Shown here piece by piece: positions 43,501 through 55,980 of a stretch of DNA of 64,000 nt. Where the stretch lies: the NCBI GenBank assembly GCA_001179505.1, contig CDMY01000224.1:97203-161202 (forward strand), read 5' to 3'. A program made the translations under genes and the position numbers. The DNA is from Vitrella brassicaformis CCMP3155 (lineage: Eukaryota; Protista; Chromerida). The notes below the pieces were generated by a model. The model worked only from the letters and a program-made list of their open reading frames with translations, was not told the DNA's origin and searched no databases. Positions within the stretch are counted from its first letter, which is position 1, and each line of letters starts with the position of its first letter.

Positions 43501-43741
43501 TACTCAGAATTTGTTTATCATATCGTCCGCATCAATGTCGCTTATCTTTTTCTTCTCTCGATATACATGCATTCCATTCATTCAAAGACAGCTGTTACTC
43601 GTTTCACCTCTGTCCACATGCATTGCATCAACATGCACACGAAGTACCTACAGGCCATCTGCCCGCTGCTCATGCTATCCAGCCAGCCATCCATCCATCC
43701 ATCACGTGGTTGGATCATTCATGTGTTGGTCTGCCCCTGGC

Positions 43742-46700
43742 TCATGCCATGCCGGCGACTGCCTTCTTGACGGGCCCCACGGTGCACGAGTTGACCTTGG
43801 CTGCGAAGCGGAGGGAGTTGAGGGTCTCGTTGAGGTGCATGGCCAGGGGAGACACATTCACAAACATCAACGTCTTCGAATCGCCACCTGCAGCCCCCCA
43901 GCCATAGACAGACAGACAGACATTCATGCGGATGGGCCCTTCTTCTCTCCGTCTGTGTGTGTGTGTGTGTGTGTGTACCGAGTGAGTCCTTGAGAAGCAT
44001 GGTGAGTTTGGAGTTGCGATAGGGCACGTGGCCCACACCACTGCTACCCTTCCCAGACGCACCACCACGGCCACCTGCATGCGCAAATGGCCACATCATG
44101 TGCACATGGGATGTGCGTGGCGTGCATCTGGCTGGCGGTCTGACTGACTGACCCATGGGGGTGGGTGGCCTCTTCTCCCCGAGCGCACAGATGACATCTC
44201 CCAGTGCGCTGAGGCTCCTGTTGATGCTCTGCGTCTCGCGCAGGCGGTCCCCCGTCACCTGAGACTTCTCCACACGCTCAGAACCCGCCAAATCAATCTG
44301 ACACACACACACACACACACAGTGACGACAATGGACAAAGGGTGCGGATCTTAATCCTTCCTGCTGGCTGACCAGCGAGAGCAGGCCGCCGACACTGGCG
44401 TTGCCCTGGCTGGCATCTTCGCCCAGGATACGCAGCTGAAACACACTGAATGATACATAGATGGATGGATGGAGAACACACACATACACATGGAATCGAC
44501 GGCCGGCCGTGTGTCTGTTTGGGGTATGTGTGTGGTGTGTGACCTATGGCTACGGGAGCTGCGGGCGTTGCATCGGGTCTCGGCTGTGGCACTGAAACCA
44601 AGGAAGGACACAATGAATATACATAGATGAGACGATCATGATTGATATGCGTGTAGGCTGCGCTGCCTACAGACCGGTTGCCGTGGGCCTGGATGAGCAG
44701 CTGGTGCACCTGGTGGGGGGCCGTCACGGGCACTGCATGGCATGGATGACACACAGATCACACACACCATAATGGCATTCGTCTCTACCGGTTTTGATGT
44801 TTGATACGACGACCACGCCCTTGCCGTCGATCTTGATGTCGGGCACCACCCCACCGCCCTCATCCTTGTCAGACGCCAGCAGATCGCGAACCGTCTCGTT
44901 GTATATCTATCTAGACACACACGGGTCGGATGCATGGACACACACGACACTGCCTGGCCTGGCCTGGGGGAGATGGGGGACCGACCTCTATGAAGGATGC
45001 CTCCACTTTGAAGGACCAGCCGCGCCTGAATGGTGTGAGTGACCTACCTGTGTGTGTTGGTGTGGTGTGCATGGTATGGTGCCCACCTATCTACCTCTGG
45101 AGTGTCTGTACGGTGGTGAATATGAGGTCGACGGCGCGCGGGATCATGCCCTTTGATTGCTGATGGATGCCATTCCATTCCACATACAACATACATTCGT
45201 TCAGGTGTGGTGTTGGTTGAGCCAGCCCCTCTCTCACCTGCCACTGCTCCTCAGATGCGTAGTTGTCAGGGCCCTGCGGGTGGTGGACAGCATAACGGTG
45301 CACAGCATCCACCATTTGGATGGATGGATGGATGTGTGTGTGTGTGACGTACCTCCATGGTGTAGGTCTTGCCGGATCCCGTCTGTCCGTATGCGAAGAT
45401 GGCCACCCTGTAGCCGTCCAACGCACTCTGAACCAACCTGATAGACAGACATCACATCGATGGATGGGCACAGAGAAAGAGACATGATTGGTGGACTGAC
45501 TGACGCTTGTACGGGTGTACAGGTCTCCCTCTCTCTGTCTGTCGCTTGTTTCCCATCTATGTATGTATGAGTGTGTGTGTGTGTGTGTCTTTGTGTGCTG
45601 ACTGTGCAATTTCCTCAAACACGACCGCCTGGGCCGCGTTGGGGGCGAACACCTGCACAACACACATAGATGTGCTCAGCCGTCCGCCTGAATGCGTTAT
45701 CGGTCAGGTAGAGTACCTTACCTACCTTATCGAATGTGAATTTGTATTGGTTGGAGTGTTCGTTGAGTCCATCCACACTGCGCATCTTGGCCGAGCACAG
45801 CGTCACCCCACAGCCGTCGGGACTCAGCTCAAGCTGACCCTCGTCCAAACCGTCAGACACCTCACGACCTGCCCACGTACGTGGACATACACGACAGGAC
45901 ACAGGTGTGGTGTGGTCTGTCTGGGTGTGGTGTATGTGTGTATGCCAACTCACTACTGCGCGGTCGGATTCTGCAGAAGACACGTATGTTGCCTCGGAGC
46001 TCTTGTGCGATGTTGTGCAGCTTCTTCCGGAGTGCCTCGGTGGCGTGCGAGTCCTCTAGCAGACGGACTAGATACGCCTCCATCTCCTAAGCACACACAC
46101 ACACACACAAACACACACAGAGGCGAAATGCAAGCAGGGAGGAGATGTGTGGATGTGTGGATGTGTGGGTGTGGGGGTAGGTATAGGTATACCGTGAAGT
46201 ACCCCTTGAGTTGGTCCACTTGTTTCTGCTGCGCGAAGGCCTCGGCGTGCTGGGTCTGTGTGAGGGCGCAGCCCAGCCAGACACACACCATCCGTACCGT
46301 ATGTGTGTGTGGTGTGGTGTGTGTGTCGTCCCCCACCTCCTTATCGTGTTTGAGTCGCTCGATCTTGGCCTCGTCCTCAGCTATCAGCGCACGCGTCTGG
46401 GCCGCACCGCTCTGACATGCACACACACACACACACACACGCACGCATATGTGTGTGTTCGGCCACTCCACTCCTCGGTGGTTCTTCCCTACCTTGAGGA
46501 CCTCATTTTGCTGTTCCTGTGCGATGATTTCCTTGTCGAGTGCGGCATTGTCGGCCTCCAGGGTCTCTATCGACACACGCAACTCCTCACTCTCCGTCTG
46601 ATTGATGCATCCACCCCATGATACACACATACACACACACGGCAGGTGTGATGATAGGCTGGGCTGCTGGGTGGTGTTGTCTGCCTGCCTCATAGTTGGT

Positions 46701-47954
46701 TTCGAGCTCCTCCAGCTGGCGCAGACTCTCCTCACGCTCGGCCGCCATCTCTACCTGCACATACAAAGCGCACAACACACACACACACACACATGGAGGT
46801 CGGCCGATGAAGTGAAACACGTGCGCATTGCGTTCATTCACGGATTGGGTGGCAGGTTGACTGACCTTGGCCTGGTCAAGCTGCTCCAGCTGCTGCTTCA
46901 ATTCCTCTAACTCGCTACGCAAACGGCTCTCTACACACACGTGTGGTGCACAGCACACATCGACACACACACACATACATACATATAAGTGCAGCCCAGC
47001 CATAAGACCCCTCTTCTTCGTTTCGTCCCCACCCTCATCGGCCGTCTGTGAGAGCCGGTTCGCTAGCTCCAGTTTCTTGGCCTTCAGCTCCTCCAAACTC
47101 ACATGCGGGGGCGGACCACCACTCCCACTACCCCCAGCAACACCAACACCATGGACGCCGCGCACACGTGGGGACGCAGCCCGACGGTTCGCCGCATGAG
47201 ATGGGGGATGGCCCGCAACTCTGGTGGGCGGCTGGTGGTGGTGCTGGTGTGTGTGTGTGTTGGGTCTCTCCTTGAGGTTGGCTATAGGTACGCGTCGTCC
47301 GCCGGGTGGGAGGGGAGGGATGCCGCGGGAGGGGTGCGATGGATTGCCGGCCTCACGGGCTTCCCTGCAGATGGGCGGGATGGATAAGAAAGGACACGTA
47401 TACACATCAATGTGATGTGCACTGTGGCGCAAGGGCACTCACTTGGCGCTTGGGGCTCGACGAGCGGCGGTCTGAAGGGAAAATAGGATGGATGGACGGA
47501 TGGATACCGCGAGTTGACCGCAGCAGTTCCTTCCTTCCTTCATCTGCTTACCTTAGTATCTTTTTTTTATATATATATGCTTACCTTAGTATCTGATGGC
47601 ATGGCTCTCCCTCTGGGCTCCCTCCCCGGCGTCTTCGCCCGCCGCATCGACACATCCTTGTCCGACAACGCCGGCGACGGATGACGCACTCTGCGCATCC
47701 GCACACAGCCATCAACACAGCGATCACCATTGCGCCATCTATGTGTTCGTTCTTCCTTACACTTTGGCCCCCGAGGATGCCGTGTGGCTGGCGTACGAAG
47801 CTGACGCATCCCCGCCCCTGGGTGTGCCCGTGTCGGACGCCGTGTCTGTCGGAGGGACGGATGGCTGCTGCAGCGGGACGTTCCTGGCAAAGATGCTCTT
47901 GGCGAAGATGCTCTTGCGGGTCGGCTGCCTCAATTGGCTCTGAAAGTCCCTCAT
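43742..47954 (-). CDS. Kinesin-14 (C-terminal, minus-end-directed motor; KIFC1/Ncd/Kar3 class), many exons
   Basis: N-terminal disordered region and coiled coil. Neck [24 protein letters not shown]; P-loop [14 protein letters not shown]; switch I NARSSRSH; switch [10 protein letters not shown]; [44 protein letters not shown]. Confidence 0.92.
47546..47594 (-). mobile_element. 16-bp direct repeat flanking a 17-nt AT/poly(A) insert that duplicates a splice donor (TSD-like footprint)
   Basis: gcttaccttagtatct at 47546-47561 and 47579-47594. The minus strand reads agatactaag-gtaagc, atatatatataaaaaaa, agatactaag-gtaagc. Confidence 0.55.
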
Positions 47955-48015
47955 CGAACCCGCCCTCCTGAGCGTTTACATTCGCAAGGAGGGGATCGCG
48001 GAGGGGAACGAGGGA

Positions 48016-51000
48016 ATGGCGGACGAGAGCGAAATGCTGTGCCCTGTCACGGTGAGCAGTAGGAAAAACTCGAAGAATTTCATCGCTACCGTTCACTGCA
48101 TCTCTGCTTTTCCTTCCAGGTGGCCGTTCGCGTAAGCGCCATATAGATCAGGCCTGATCCATGGATCTGCAACACACACACAGACGCATACAAGAACCGC
48201 ACGGTATTTTGTTCTCCTCCTTTCCGCCTGCAGATCCGTCCGTTCCTTCCCGACGAGGCCTCGCTGGGCGATGACGTCGCCAGCCAGTCGTCCATCGACA
48301 CCCCCGACCCCCACACCATCATCGTCAAACTCGACACAAACACATTCATACCACAATCCCAGCAGCAGCAACAGCAGCAGCTCCAGCAGCAGCACTCACA
48401 GGCGGCGGCTGATGGCGATGGCGTTGACGGTGTGGTGGCGGGGTCATCCGCCAATGGCAGTGATGGCCGTTTGGAGCAGCTGACGGTGTTCACTGCGGAT
48501 GCGATATTGGGTGACCAGGAGTCGATGTTTGAGGCAATAGGGATGCCGCTGCTGAGGAATGCGCTCGAGGGGATGAACGGGGCCCTCATCGCTGTCGGGG
48601 CAAAAGGTGAGTCAGTCGGCCAATGGGGGGATGGGTGGATGGAGGAGGGGGAGATCACGCCAGGCCAGGGGAGGCATTGGGTGTTTGTGGATCTTCTTTC
48701 TGCCCGTGTGTTTGTACGTGTGTGTGTGTGCAGGCACGGGCAAGACGTACACTCTGCAGGGCACGGAGGGTAGGCCGAGCCTTTCCTTTTCCTCCCTCCC
48801 CTTTTGTGTGCCGACTCACTCTTCTTGTCTCGTCTCCCTCGCGTGCAGCCGAGCCAGGTCTCATCCTCCGCATACTCAAAGGTAATGAACAAACAGACGG
48901 ATGGATGGACTGGGTGGATGGATGGATGGATCGGACAAATCACATCTTCAGAGTTGTTTCGTTGGGCCCGCGAGGTGGAGGAGTCGCCCGTGGCTGCGGC
49001 AGCACCTGCAGAGATGGCATTCCGCACAGCCAAAGTGCGCGTAGCCGTGTCGTTCACGGAAATCGCCCACAACAAAATCAGGTTGGTCACGCACACACAC
49101 ACAGACAGAGAGAATGAGGACAGGTGGGGGGACTCGTGGAGAGCGTGTGTGTGTGTGTGTGTCGTGTTGCAGGGATTTGTTGGTTCCTCGTCTGGGCGGC
49201 AGTGCCGACCTGACACTCTACGAACACCCGGAATGCGGCACATTCGTACCGGCACTCACACACGTAAACCAGCCCCCCCCCCATGTCTCGATGACGGCAC
49301 TCGCGTCCCCTCTGCACCTTCGTGTGTGTGTGTGTGTGTTTATAGGTTGCTGTGGATAGCGAGGATGAGGTGTCGAGCCTGTTGTCGTATGCGCGTCAGA
49401 AGCGCCTGGCCCACGCCGCCACCATGAAGGACATGGAGTGGACGGCACACACACTCTTCACCATCAAAGTCGCACAGGTACGCCACGCCACGCCAGCAGA
49501 CCCGTAGACAGACCTTCCTTGCAATAAATCCATGGGATGGATGCGTGTGTGTGTAGGTGCTTGCTGACGGGAGTGTAGCGCGTGTGAGCCGTATAGAGTT
49601 GTTCGACATCGCATCGACGGACGACTGCCGCCAGCCCGACACATCCCCACCCACATACACAGCAGCCGGCACCACCACAGAGGAGGGCTTCCCGCCCGGC
49701 CGGCCCATCAACCCCTCACTCACTGAGGTCGGCACTGCACTGCATGCCCCGCCCCCTCAGCCAGCACACAGTGTATGTATGCCTCTATATCTGTATGTGT
49801 GTGTGTGTGTGTTGATGCGTCCATCGATCAGTTGGGCATGTTGATTGGGCAGTTGGGGATGCATCAGGGGAACGGGGATAGTGGGGAGGGGGAGTCGGGC
49901 AGGCAGAGTAGCCGTATGGACGCATCACGCATTATCGACGTCTGGGGGCCTGACTGTCAGCCACACAAACACACACACACACAGATACACAGATAGAGAG
50001 AGATGGGCTTGTGTTGTGTGATGTCTGTGTGTGTCATTCATGTGTGTCAGGTTTCCGTGCGTCAGGATCCAAGCTGTGTCTGCTGTTGAAGGATGCACTC
50101 ATGGGCAACTCCAAAACCTGCGTACGCTGCTGGCCGCTTCCTGTCCATCTCCCATTTCATGCCTGCCTGCTATAACATGACTGTGTGCAGATGGTGGCCA
50201 CGCTGTCCCCGACTCGCCGAGCGGCCGCAGGCTCACTCATCACCATGAGGTCTGTCTTTCTGTCAGCCGTACGAGCGCACACGCCTCCATCCATCCACTG
50301 ACTCGTTGGCCGCGTGTGTGTGTGCAGGTTGGCGGGCTGTGTTCGTCAGCTCAAGACGCGCCCCGTCGTCAACTTCGACCACTCTGACAGACTCATCAAA
50401 GAAATGAACCGGGCAAGTTGTACATGGCCACCGCTGACATCCTTATGTGGTTTCCTTGTCCATCCATCCACCCACCCACTCATCAGGACATAGAGTTCCT
50501 CCGTGCCCAGCTGGAGTATGCAGCCGAAGGCACGCACATCGAAGACCTCAAAGTATGCGGCATGCACAACGCAAAATGATATGTGTGTGTGTGTATCGGG
50601 TTTGGTTTGCTTTTGCGGCAGTTGGCGTTGTCTGACCGCGAGCGGCTGATCCAGCAGCTGCAGTGCCTCGGCAACGAACACGACAAAGAGGTGCAACGCA
50701 GAGCAGACGGCTTCGAACCAAAACATGTGTGTGTCTGATGCAGTTGGAGCGCACCGCGTTCCTCCACAACCATCGCCTGCTCGCACTCCGGGACTGGGGT
50801 CTCAAGGAAGGTCTCACACACACACACACCCCCCAAACAAGGACCATCCCTACCACTCCTTTGTGTGCGTCTTTTTGTATGTATGTGTGTGGGTGAGTGT
50901 AGGTTACCAGGTGCCAGCGTCGTTTGGGGGCGAGGGCGGTTTGCTAGCCAAGAGCACCCCCCGGCACATCCCACACATCGCCTCCGACATACTCAATGCA

Positions 51001-54000
51001 CTCCCATACCTCGAAAACATCTCGGACGTACACACAACACAACCACATAAAGCTTCAAAGCTCCCATGTCAACGGTGCCGGCATTGCCTGTTGTGGTTGT
51101 GGTTGTGGTGGTGTGTGTGTTTGTGTGTGTGTTTGTGTGTGTCACACATGCGATGCCATACAGGGTGTGGGTGAGTCGAGCGGCGTGCTGCAGTACCCTT
51201 TGCTGCCGGACATGGACTTCACTGTCGGCGCACGACTCGACAACAGACTCCCACTCAGAGCACTTGGTACTCAGCACAACAGACAGATCACTGCGAGGTG
51301 GATGGATGAATGGGCATTCATTGTAGCTGTGTGTGTCACTCGCTTGCACCGACAGGCATCCCGGAGCGCTTCTGTGTGCTGACTTACGACCAGAACAACA
51401 AGCAAGTCATCCTTCAGAAGCTCGCCAGAGGTACCTGCAGGACACACCGAGACAGAACAATACACCAGATGCCCACATCAACACACACACACACACATAC
51501 ACCTCCCTCTCGCTCTCCGCTCTGCAGGTGGTGCGTATCATTTGACGGTCAACGGTCGCGAGATCGGTGCGGGCGAGCGCGTGACGCTCTTCAACGGCGA
51601 CAGGATCATCCTGGGGCAGGCACGTGCGATGCGGCTGGTCATGCCGGGAGGGAAGGGGGGCAAAGGGCAGGGGTATGAACCCGATATGGGCATGGGGTGT
51701 GAGGATGGAGAGGAGACGAGGCTCGTGCCCGCCGCCACTCTGCACGCAATGGAGGTAGGTAGGTACCTATGTGTGGATGGATGGATGGACCGACAGAGAG
51801 ACCATGGTGGTACATGGGTGCGTGTGGTGTGTGGTATGTGATGGGGTGTGTGCAGGTAGAAGTGTTGGAGAATTCTCCCGAGCAGGACGCCGTGCTCGAC
51901 ATGCTAGATAGCGTCAGGGTACGCACTCACCAAAGGCACCCGCATTGCATTGCCGTGTGTGCCCTCCCTCCCCTTCTTCGTTCTTTCATGGGCATACAGG
52001 ATGTGTTGGGTTTGTCGAACAGCATCATTCCCTTCATGGCCCGCCAGATCGGCGAGGCTGACCTCCTCGTCAAAGAGGCGGTGCGTGCGTGACGATGCAT
52101 GCATGACACTTCCTTTTCCTTCCTGTCTCATGTATGTCTCTCTCGTGACATTCCCTCCCTGCACACAGAACGAGATACTGAGTGAGTTGCGTCCCGAGGA
52201 CCACCTGCAGTTTGCCGTCGAGATGTCGCTGCCCGTCTTCCCACACGACACAGAGGAACCCACCACCGCAATCCCACAACTCGTAAGCCACCGAGCGGGC
52301 AAGGGAAGGAAACGAACGGCGTCCATTACAATGCATTGCGTCCATTTTTTGATGTGTTCGCTCGCCGCAGGCCGTGCGTTTGTGGCGTCACCCGCACGTC
52401 CCCGTCGACATCAGGGGCCTCACCTCCTCACCCACCAGACGGCTGGCCTTGCACAAGGAAGACATGCAGTCGCAGCAAGAAGCTGACGGCCTGGATGCCA
52501 ACGCAGACACAGAGGGAGAGGGTGGCGAGGAATGCCAAGAGCAGAAGACCATGGCCCAGCCACAGCCACAGCCGCTGCTGCTGTGGCAGCTCGACCGGTT
52601 CAAGGACCGGCTTGACGCCATGCGGGGCGTGTACCAGGACTTCGTGACGACTCAGATGGAGGGAGGGGACAGCGAGTGGACACTGAATCCCTCTAGCGAG
52701 CCGTGGCGCGACCTCACGGGCAGCGAACTTGCCAAAATCACACTGCAGGTATGTTTGCCGGTGATGGGAAGAGATGGATCGCAACGGATGGTGTGATGGT
52801 GTGATGGTTGCAGGAGAAGATATGCTTGTTGGAGCAGCGGGAGGCGGAGAGACAGGCCCTCGAGATGGAGCACCTCACCATGCCGCACCAGGCGGGCGGC
52901 CCATCCTCAAACCTCATGGCCCTGTGCGGAGGCGGACGCACCATACACATCAGCCAGGCGGTCAGGCGAGAATTCTTTATTTTCAAAGCTGATTCCCCAT
53001 TCCCTCCCTTGTTTGTTTTGGTGTGCGTGCAGATGTGCCTCCCTGACCGTGGATCGTACGAGGACGAAGAGAACGACAGCGACTTCGCACACTACCCACA
53101 CATGACCAGACGCAACAAATCCGACACCGCACTCGGAAGGTGAGCCAGCCAGTCACACCGCATCGAACACCATATGCGCACCCCATCCTCTTTTATCTCT
53201 GTCTGTGTTTTAGGAGGCGGGTCCCCAAGAAGCCTGCAGTTGTCCCGAAGATCATTACGATCAGCAGCGGCAGCAATCGCCCCCACGAGACGTCCACCGC
53301 GTCCAAGTCCACAGGCCGCAGCAGCAAGACCAGGCTCATGCAGGGGGGCCGTGCCATGTCGTCGCGTGACACCGGGGCCGACGAGAGCGGCGGGGCGTCA
53401 CCCAAACAGAGGGGGCCATTCGCTGGGGCGACCTCCATGGTGTCCGGCGGCCGCAAGAGCTCACCCACAGGTGGTGCTGGTGCTGGCGTTGGCGTTGGTG
53501 CTTCTGAGGTGGTGCCGAGGGGGGCGGACTCCGCCCTCCGCCTCAATGAGGAACTGGCAAAGGTGAGGAAAGATGCACGGCTGGGATCCCCATGCTGCCG
53601 ATCTTGTCTTCTTTGGCGTTGTGCAGTTGCGCGGTCAGTACGGTCGGCTGTCGAGTGAGCACTTTAGCCTCAAAGCTGCCCACATTCAACTCAAAGTACC
53701 GTTACGACACACAGACGACACACAGATGATGGCGCCTGCAGTGAGATCCATCCATCTCTCCACCCTGTGTCTTCGCGCAGGACGAGGCGGACAAGCTGCG
53801 CACACAGCTCAGGAAGAAGACGCCACGCACCCCAGCACCCCCGGCAAAGGAGGCCGCCGTGCTGAGTCGGCATAGCCACCCAAGATCACATACATTGCTG
53901 ATGTATTGACGCGCGAGGGTGCGTGTGGTGTGGTGTGGTGTGGGTAAATCAGGTGATGTGGAGGCATCGGCCAGGGCGCAGCTGCTGGGGATTATCAAGG

Positions 54001-55980
54001 AGGTGGAGGGGCTGCAGAACACAGAGCAGCAACTGGTGACGCGACTGCTCAGCACCACTGGTACATACCTGTCCACCTATGTGCAGCAGGGAGACACGCA
54101 GAAACCTGTATGCTCACGCCTGTGTGTGTGCGTCAGAGATGAGTGCTGGCAAGCGCCGCATTGGGCTCTCCGCAGCAGAAGTAGATAGACTCCGATCAAG
54201 ACTCGGTAACACACACACACACACACACACAAGAAATCTCTCCTTGACCTCTTCTCGTATGCTATGTGTTGTGTCTGTTTGTCTGTCTGTCTGTCTCCAG
54301 AGACGTTGCAAGCGCTGACCAAAGAGCAGGTGGTCAACGTGCAGGCCATGCGCGGCATCCTCATAAACACTCAAGAACCACCGCCCGGCAAAGACACACT
54401 GCCGCCCCAGACCAACATCGACTCGACCCCCGCAGCCAAGGCAACCGAGGTGGCCGCGCCCGGCCGCCTGCAGTGGCCACACACGATAACATACCTGAGC
54501 GCGCCGGGCGGGGGTGTGGCCGGTCGGGGGTATGGTATGGCGCCACCAGCTGCATCAGCGGCCAAGTGTCCACCTGCCCCTGCCCCTCCCCTGTACAAGG
54601 CCACCTACAGCTACTACCCCGCACCGACGTATGCCAGCCCCAACCAACGAGGGGTGGGTCAACACAGAAAGGATCAAACAGGCAGGCACGGAGGCAGGCA
54701 GCCAGAGAGGAAGGAACGAACATGTGTCTCTCTCTCTCTCTCTATTTCCCTCCCTCCCTCTCTGTGTCTGTAGGGTCCCATGTCGGGTGCGTATGGCCCG
54801 TTGTATGCCCAGCTGCAGCGCGGCTCCAACCAGTACATCCCCAAACCAGCATACCCACCGCCAGTAGGAAGAGCAGCCCCCATGGCAAAGGCACCCTCAC
54901 CCACACCCAGCACCACCGGCAGCTGGCAGGACGCCGTATCGACGGCCATCCGGGGGATCCCCTGGCCCGGCGCGCAACACCTCTCCTATCAGGTCAGAGT
55001 GACCGACAGAGAGCCACGCACACAACATTCACATAAAGACATCTCACCAAAGGACCTTCCTGCAGGCGCCGGTGATGGGCAGCCGTGAGGGCCCGACGGC
55101 AGTACCCATGACACATCGAGAGGGCAAGAACGAGCCAGTTGGGCAGGAGGCCGCGCCACAAGTGGTCCCGAAGTCCCCGCCACTTGACAAGACGGCCAAG
55201 GCGTTCCCTGCACCAAAGAGGGGAGCTGGCGAGCAGGACAATCTGCGGACGTTGGTGCGGTCTGCGAGTATGGGCATTCACGACAGAGCCAACCCGGTGA
55301 GCACAGAAAGAGGTGAAAGAGATGCGCCTCTTTGTTGCTTTACAAATGTGCTGTCGATTGCTTGACGCAGCCTGGGATCAGCCGTGTGACGTCAGTGCCG
55401 CATTTTGGAACGTATATACGATTTGATGTTGGAGAGAGAGGAATCGACAGCGACATATACCATGCCATGCTTGATACATTTATGTGTGGTGCAGTGGTGG
55501 GGCTGTCTATCCGGCCGGCATGCCATCCTACCCCTACCAGGCTGCATCTGTAGCTACGTCGCCTATGGTAAGTTGCCTGCCACCTGTACAAACAACCATC
55601 CATGGGGACTACTCCTCTCTCCCTTTTTTCTGAAGCTGGTGTCGCGCCCGCCCGTCTACCTGCCCATCACCCCCCCGCCCCACCCATCCCACCACCAGCA
55701 GCACCAGCACCAGCACCAGCAGCACCAGCAGCATCAGCAGCATCAGCATCAGCGATACAACATCTATCCGCCGCCCGCCATGGCATACACACCCTCGCAG
55801 AGCACCCCAGACCTACGAGGCGTCACCCGACAGACCACGGCACCCCACACACACGGCATCACCACCACCACGCAGCAGAGGGCGCCCTCACTCGTATCGC
55901 GTGTGGTGGCCGGTGCAGGCAAGCTGTGGACACAGACGACAGCAGGCACGTCAGATGGGCTGGCGGACTACCAGCAGTGA
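48016..55980 (+). CDS. Kinesin-3-like protein (N-terminal motor, FHA, KIF1-type domain, long low-complexity tail) with a degenerate motor
   Basis: Motor segments: VAVR|IRP, ALEGMNGALIAVGAK|GTGKTYTLQG, VAVSFTEIAHNKIR|DLL, LYEHPECGTFVPAL, SKLCLLLKDALMGNSKT. FHA region: LPYLENIS..VNGREIGAGERVTLFNGDRIILG. KIF1-type: WQLDRFKDRLDAMRGVYQ..EPW. The 3' end is the least certain part. Confidence 0.8.

Follow-up and report, generated by a model that had tools for sequence, protein, structure and literature searches.

A kinesin-14 gene and a probable kinesin-3-like pseudo-motor gene arranged head-to-head in Vitrella brassicaformis

Organisation of the locus

The DNA analysed here is a stretch of 64,000 nt (the window) of Vitrella brassicaformis CCMP3155 (assembly GCA_001179505.1, contig CDMY01000224.1, positions 97,203 to 161,202 of the forward strand), in which two genes of the kinesin superfamily were identified side by side and in divergent orientation. 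The minus-strand gene (43742–47954) is split by many short introns and encodes a kinesin-14 with a C-terminal motor, as identified by Pfam, by a kinesin-14 hidden Markov model (HMM) and by a spliced RNA contig (record 16 of run X5). The plus-strand gene (48016–55980) encodes a kinesin-3-like protein with a probable pseudo-motor, i.e. a kinesin-like head which has probably lost its ATPase activity. Exons E1–E17 of this gene (48016–51027) are RNA-supported, the remainder of the model is approximate, and the end at 55980 is predicted. The DNA of the locus is intron-rich, and the introns are short and CA/TG-rich.

In the sequence, the start codon of the kinesin-14 gene (ATG at 47954–47952, minus strand) is separated from the start codon of the plus gene (ATG at 48016) by a spacer of 61 nt (47955–48015), which would contain a shared promoter region and the 5′ untranslated regions (UTRs). 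The same head-to-head pair, with both ATGs and a spacer of 56 nt, is borne by a metagenome contig of ENA (ERZ893784, k147_186320, 3,146 nt; hereafter L001) with 85% nucleotide identity to window positions 46813–50054. Between L001 and the window, exons are 93–100% and introns mostly 84–97% identical, and identity of the protein sequence encoded by E3 of the plus gene is 94%. The contig suggests the existence of a second close relative or strain, one not in culture. No further relatives were found in two metagenome scans.

Transcripts and start codons

Among the public runs that contain the stretch, the RNA evidence comes from one run (X5) of one study, the contigs of which skip short GT-AG or GC-AG intervals, i.e. 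are RNA-like. Record 16 is a spliced mRNA of the minus gene (2548 nt), and its last piece, 47761–47941, ends at 47941. Record 17 is a spliced mRNA of the plus gene (4678 nt) with pieces at 48234–48607, 48950–49079, 49555–49725 and 50901–51028; the first aligned piece is unlisted, and a 5′ reach of at most to about 47993 was computed from the record offsets. No overlap between the two records was seen in run X5, where their ends lie about 51 nt apart, contig ends not being equal to transcription start sites. With two divergent genes, a short common spacer and transcription of both, the locus is a head-to-head pair.

In the kinesin-14 gene, the first coding exon (47761–47954, minus strand) was delimited from the RNA piece 47761–47941 and by comparison to L001. 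Twelve of the 14 differences between the two sequences affect the third base of a codon (omega 0.07), and the exon has an in-frame indel of 3 nt. The ATG at 47954 is the sole one in this exon, and conservation falls directly past it. The third-position bias, the single ATG and the drop in conservation together identify 47954 as the true start of kinesin-14. Both start codons, predicted about 61 nt apart in an earlier analysis of the letters without database searches (the sequence-only reading), are thus backed by the spliced RNA contigs and by L001, and at 47954 also by coding constraint; the true starts do not lie far apart.

With 61 nt between the ATGs and about 51 nt between the contig ends, either a very short shared bidirectional promoter region or overlapping 5′ ends are implied, and the earlier proposal of a shared bidirectional promoter or overlapping 5′ UTRs is upheld. 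The spacer shows 71% identity to L001 with indels (61 nt vs 56 nt), which is below the flanking exons and most introns. In the alignment to L001, full conservation in the central part of the spacer is confined to one block, GTTTACATT (47974–47982). On the minus strand the block reads ATG-TAA (47976–47981), also kept in L001, which would be a minimal one-codon upstream open reading frame if transcription of the kinesin-14 gene begins beyond 47981. No enrichment of GTTTACATT was detected in the 64-kb window. The word GCGAGCT is absent from the spacer and is not enriched in the 64-kb window (13 matches vs 8.8 expected).

The kinesin-14 gene

For the profile searches, a local kinesin profile was built from seven full kinesin-14 motors obtained by word search, and all 2,038 stop-free pieces from the six reading frames of the 64-kb window were scanned with it. 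The minus gene gave nine colinear kinesin-14 HMM matches, from 46056 down to 43757, and its exons are matched by the Pfam families Kinesin and Microtub_bd. The neck and the start of the motor are located at 45955–46086 (minus strand). In a PDB search with the neck exon, all significant matches (E < 0.1) were neck-motor chains of kinesin-14 proteins (Kar3, Ncd, KCBP, KIFC1), the best being Kar3 (E = 2.4e-7) and Ncd (6e-7), so the neck is of the family-specific type.

The three motifs of the motor follow in order on the minus strand. The P-loop exon region (45335–45439) was recognised by Pfam (E = 2.3e-13) and by the local HMM (59.8 bits), switch I is read as NARSSRSH in the translation (44513–44587; HMM profile positions 257–281), and switch II (DLAGSER) with helix alpha4 (44154–44312) gave an HMM score of 74 bits, with Kar3, KCBP and KIFC3 as top PDB matches. 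Translation, HMM and PDB matches therefore agree with the sequence-only reading that the minus gene has its P-loop and both switches intact. The Pfam and HMM matches extend from the neck at 46086 to 43757 and are followed by the stop codon at 43742–43744, as had been claimed, which places the motor at the C-terminus. In the word search, the named relatives of the gene were KIFC1/C2/C3 and KIN-14, and heptad-like charged stretches are visible in its translation. The exon structure at 47364–47760 and below 45650 is modelled only, and the low-complexity N-terminal part is approximate.

Judged from these sequence features, the minus gene is a standard kinesin-14 of the Kar3/Ncd/KIFC1 type. The protein is predicted, by analogy to its family, to dimerise via an N-terminal stalk and to move towards microtubule minus ends. 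A match of 6.3 bits to a fragment-based kinesin profile at 43585–43647 (minus strand), just below the end of the kinesin-14 reading frame and within the presumed 3′ UTR, is probably due to chance.

Structure of the plus-strand gene

Splice-site reading gave 17 exons, E1–E17, at 48016–51027, with an open reading frame of 560 amino acids. The summed exon lengths reproduce the record positions in the RNA contig (E9 at 867–1037, E17 from 1579). The 3′ part of the gene, from 51.0 to 56.0 kb, is an approximate exon-chain model only; judging by the length of the RNA contig, the protein would have about 1,400–1,500 amino acids.

The joint 48054>48234 of record 17 carries nine extra letters, GCCGTTCGC. 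A 12-nt micro-exon (exon 2, 48120–48131, plus strand), which is identical to L001 in 12 of 12 positions, explains these nine letters plus three ambiguous ones, and codes for VAVR of the N-terminal VAVRIRPF strand. The N-terminus of the protein accordingly reads MADESEMLCPVT-VAVR-IRPF, and the motor fold begins at residue 13. The P-loop, GAKGTGKT, is intact and split by an intron between E3 (48234–48606) and E4 (48734–48769) as GAKG|TGKTYTLQG, and E3 contains a poly-Q insert. The motor is followed by a neck (LIKEMNRDIEFLRAQLE), more coiled-looking sequence, and then an FHA-like region.

Introns of the GC-AG type were found in both genes, at 50413–50486 (plus strand; donor GCAAGT after exon 13 of the plus gene) and at 46598–46688 (minus strand; GC donor, in the kinesin-14 gene), and both are supported by the RNA contigs, through joints or through record positions. 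Intronic repeats of the GGATGG and CACACA types (46621–46640, 48890–48935 and 49088–49113) had very high word depth in all runs and yield many false long-range contig joints, e.g. 46638>48913.

Kinesin fold and domain order of the plus-strand protein

Profile, PDB and ESM Atlas searches with the plus gene were made exon by exon. Every match of at least 5 bits to the first profile in the window falls within the two kinesin genes. In the plus gene, E3 (5.6 bits), E4 (8.0 bits) and E8 (12.3 bits) exceeded the background maximum of 4.4 bits, with E11 (2.9 bits) under the background. With a profile of 120 sequences, E11 (9.7 bits) and E8 (11.7 bits) were above the top background match of that scan, the one of 6.3 bits just below the stop of the minus gene. 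The plus-strand matches on E3, E4, E8 and E11 are colinear, covering profile positions 94 to 362. The Pfam kinesin profile matched E3 at profile positions 29–83 with an E-value of 0.044, and E8 (49346–49477) at positions 170–216 with E = 0.0079, both below the cut-off, as queries of single exons.

Single-exon PDB searches with E3, E8, E9 and the FHA exon gave no usable matches, these exons being too short and diverged. An exhaustive protein search with E3 returned no relative at E ≤ 0.001 other than one fragment of 182 amino acids (P0001) from a near-identical organism, which lies on L001, and neither a full-length protein nor an orthologue from a distant taxon was found in the same search. 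A kinesin fold is thus supported for the plus motor by weak exon-level matches, and the domain appears to be very diverged.

The FHA-like domain comprises three exons (51164–51266, 51356–51430 and 51528–51754, the last end being modelled) on the plus strand. Here the Pfam FHA profile was matched at positions 41–67 with a score of 14.3 bits (E = 0.055) against the cut-off of 20.7. FHA clusters account for 24 of the 30 nearest ESM Atlas clusters of the FHA exon, and in one of the 24 FHA occurs together with Kinesin_assoc. The FHA domain named in the sequence-only reading is therefore weakly supported, by the position of the region after the neck and by its Atlas neighbours, its Pfam match being below the cut-off. 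Within 51164–51650, the usual Ser and His places for phosphothreonine binding seem, by eye, to be Pro and Phe (GIPERFC), and the FHA-like domain may also be non-canonical.

By domain order and neck type, the plus protein would be classified as kinesin-3-like. As in kinesin-3 proteins of the KIF1A, KIF13 and KIF16 type, an N-terminal motor is followed by a neck coil and an FHA-like domain; unlike in these, both switch motifs are degenerate, loop 11 is lengthened, and loop 12, of acidic or neutral character, has no K-loop. Unlike in usual FHA domains, the phosphothreonine-binding residues seem changed when inspected by eye. Loop 12 (49850–49955) reads HQGNGDSGEGESGRQSSRMDASRIIDVWGPD and has no lysines, i.e. 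the K-loop of kinesin-3 is missing; an acidic, Gly/Ser-rich insert stands in its place. Loop 11 (49626–49706) is Pro/Thr-rich and about 13 residues longer than usual. In normal kinesins, loops 11 and 12 face the microtubule.

Degenerate switch motifs and purifying selection

In exon E8, the profile alignment places KDMEWTAH on ndrSSRSH, i.e. on switch I (NxxSSRSH), so that neither the asparagine nor the serine pair nor the arginine of this motif is retained; the residues are identical in L001. Exon E9 (49557–49727, plus strand), which is covered by an RNA piece, carries RIELFDIASTDD at the place of strand beta7 and switch II (DLAGSE), then the long Pro/Thr-rich loop 11 and INPSLTE, the start of alpha4. 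Located after the switch I exon and ahead of INPSLTE|LGMLIGQL (alpha4), the hexamer DIASTD occupies the place of DLAGSE, with changes of Gly to Ser and Glu to Asp that are assigned by position only; the motif is identical in L001. Exon E9 was recognised by no search, whether of PDB, HMM profiles or ESM Atlas. The loss of the switch motifs in the plus gene, as noted in the sequence-only reading, holds for switch I by profile alignment and for switch II by position alone.

Over 379 codons compared to L001, the plus motor has a ratio of nonsynonymous to synonymous substitution rates (dN/dS) of 0.26. Its four motifs, including the P-loop and both degenerate switches, are all identical in the two sequences. 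The low ratio together with the identical motifs indicates that the pseudo-motor is kept by selection. The plus gene is expressed, correctly spliced and under purifying selection. A decaying pseudogene was ruled out by the spliced mRNA, the open frame of 560 amino acids and the dN/dS of 0.26.

In studied kinesins, single changes at the switch positions abolish or uncouple ATPase activity, and loss of the switch residues should abolish hydrolysis and leave nucleotide binding possible. Since the P-loop and RxRP are kept, the plus protein probably still binds nucleotide. Since the serines and the arginine are replaced in switch I, and glycine and glutamate in switch II, it would be unable to sense or hydrolyse the gamma-phosphate, and we infer that the motor is probably catalytically dead. 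As the gene is expressed and selected, its product would most likely be a static microtubule binder or scaffold, built of an N-terminal motor fold, a neck coil, the FHA-like domain and a long low-complexity tail.

The same residues could in principle belong to a fast-evolving kinesin that is an active ATPase with non-canonical switch residues. The intact P-loop and RxRP, the retained switch II aspartate and final switch I histidine, and the purifying selection would fit such a motor, and the reading of switch II is uncertain, its exon having been aligned by no tool. The whole SSR triplet of switch I is however replaced, as are the glycine and the glutamate of switch II, at positions where one change suffices to disable or uncouple the ATPase, and we regard an active plus motor as highly improbable.

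Comparison with motor and pseudo-motor pairs

An active kinesin-14 adjoining a kinesin-like protein without canonical switch motifs led the sequence-only reading to propose a pair similar to yeast Kar3 with Cik1 or Vik1, in which the two proteins would form a heterodimer via their coiled coils, with one active and one non-catalytic head. There is a likeness, in that a catalytic kinesin-14 is found beside a kinesin-fold protein that is probably unable to hydrolyse ATP. The common promoter region, the similar contig depth of the two genes in one run, and the estimate that two kinesin genes would seldom be neighbours by chance are also in line with a partnership. The genes of yeast Kar3, Cik1 and Vik1 are not known to be neighbours.

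The defining layout is nevertheless different. Cik1 and Vik1 have a C-terminal motor-homology domain which binds microtubules and is without the elements for ATP binding and hydrolysis, and in the Kar3-Cik1 and Kar3-Vik1 dimers both heads sit side by side at the same end of a long coiled coil (PMC4338441). In the plus protein, the motor fold starts at residue 13 rather than behind a coiled coil, and the ATP-binding elements GAKGTGKT and RIRP are kept, both here and in L001; unlike Cik1 and Vik1, it also has a kinesin-3-type neck and an FHA-like domain. Because the plus head is N-terminal and the kinesin-14 head C-terminal, a parallel coiled coil would keep the two heads apart, one at each end, rather than placing a head devoid of ATP elements beside that of the motor. 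The proposal of a Kar3-Cik1/Vik1-like pair is thus contradicted by the layout, and such a heterodimer seems extremely unlikely.

Kinesin folds that serve as microtubule binders or scaffolds without a working ATPase cycle are known from pseudo-kinesins, such as the kinesin-11 proteins KIF26A/B and VAB-8, and trypanosome KIN-B. The family and domain set of KIF26A/B, VAB-8 and KIN-B differ from those of the plus protein. KIN-A and KIN-B share a layout with N-terminal heads, unlike the Vitrella pair, in which the heads are at opposite protein ends. KIN-A and KIN-B are described as orphan kinesins that act together (PMC10987093).

Genome context and interpretation of the pair

In the V. brassicaformis genome, 22,817 genes are contained in 72.7 Mb with a median of 92 bp from one gene to the next, and close neighbours show an excess of head-to-head pairs, the co-expression of which is mostly modest (Woo et al. 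2015, PMC4501334). Against this background, the spacer of 61 nt from ATG to ATG is at the tight end of what would be a usual kind of arrangement for Vitrella. Like other head-to-head pairs of this genome (Woo et al. 2015), the two genes are divergent with a spacer well under 1 kb; unlike generic pairs, both are from one superfamily. In such a compact genome, with its excess of head-to-head neighbours and mostly modest co-expression, tight spacing is not evidence of partnership. Local duplication as the origin of the pair is unsupported, the head positions, neck types and P-loop intron positions being different.

We consider it probable that the locus holds two separate kinesin-superfamily genes in the head-to-head orientation typical of a very compact chromerid genome, with products that work independently. 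The 61-nt spacer would act as a shared core promoter region, or as two interleaved ones, and sharing a core promoter need not mean that the products cooperate.

Several observations weigh against this interpretation. Under the assumption of 30–60 kinesin genes among 22,817, only about 0.04–0.16 adjacent kinesin pairs are estimated to occur by chance genome-wide, and fewer in head-to-head orientation; local duplication does not account for the adjacency, as the genes come from separate families. Contig word depth in run X5 is near-equal for the two genes (64.4 and 62.9), depth being a poor measure of expression. Furthermore, the kinesin fold of the plus protein is drawn from weak exon matches, and its switch II is read by position only.

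The near-equal depth and the low estimate for chance adjacency of two kinesin-superfamily genes would also suit a co-regulated module without a heterodimer, in which the shared promoter couples two microtubule proteins, e.g. in the formation of the spindle or of the zoospore flagellum. Here the pseudo-motor may tether or regulate the microtubules on which kinesin-14 acts. At most about 38 nt separate the possible transcription start sites, one and the same run contains transcripts of both genes, and the arrangement is kept in L001. The synteny with L001 is however uninformative on function, as at 85% nucleotide identity the two sequences are too close, and the spacer (71%) is less conserved than most introns. 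Head-to-head arrangement with mostly modest co-expression is in addition the norm in Vitrella (PMC4501334), and the expression data are from one sample only. A module of this kind is accordingly unlikely.

In its more specific form, a core promoter of at most 40 nt would couple kinesin-14 to a nucleotide-locked pseudo-motor within one spindle or flagellar microtubule module, which we judge to be very unlikely. If true, it would represent an independent origin of a partnership between an active and a dead motor (cf. Kar3-Cik1/Vik1 and KIN-A/KIN-B), in relatives of malaria parasites and with opposite head positions. A true module of motor and pseudo-motor would be a new example of dead heads tuning kinesin-14, in a lineage near the apicomplexan parasites. 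As it stands, with two genes whose products are probably independent, the locus provides a well-supported gene model, with its micro-exon of 12 nt, for an expressed and selected kinesin-3-like pseudo-motor. It also illustrates clearly how tight a bidirectional promoter can be in Vitrella.

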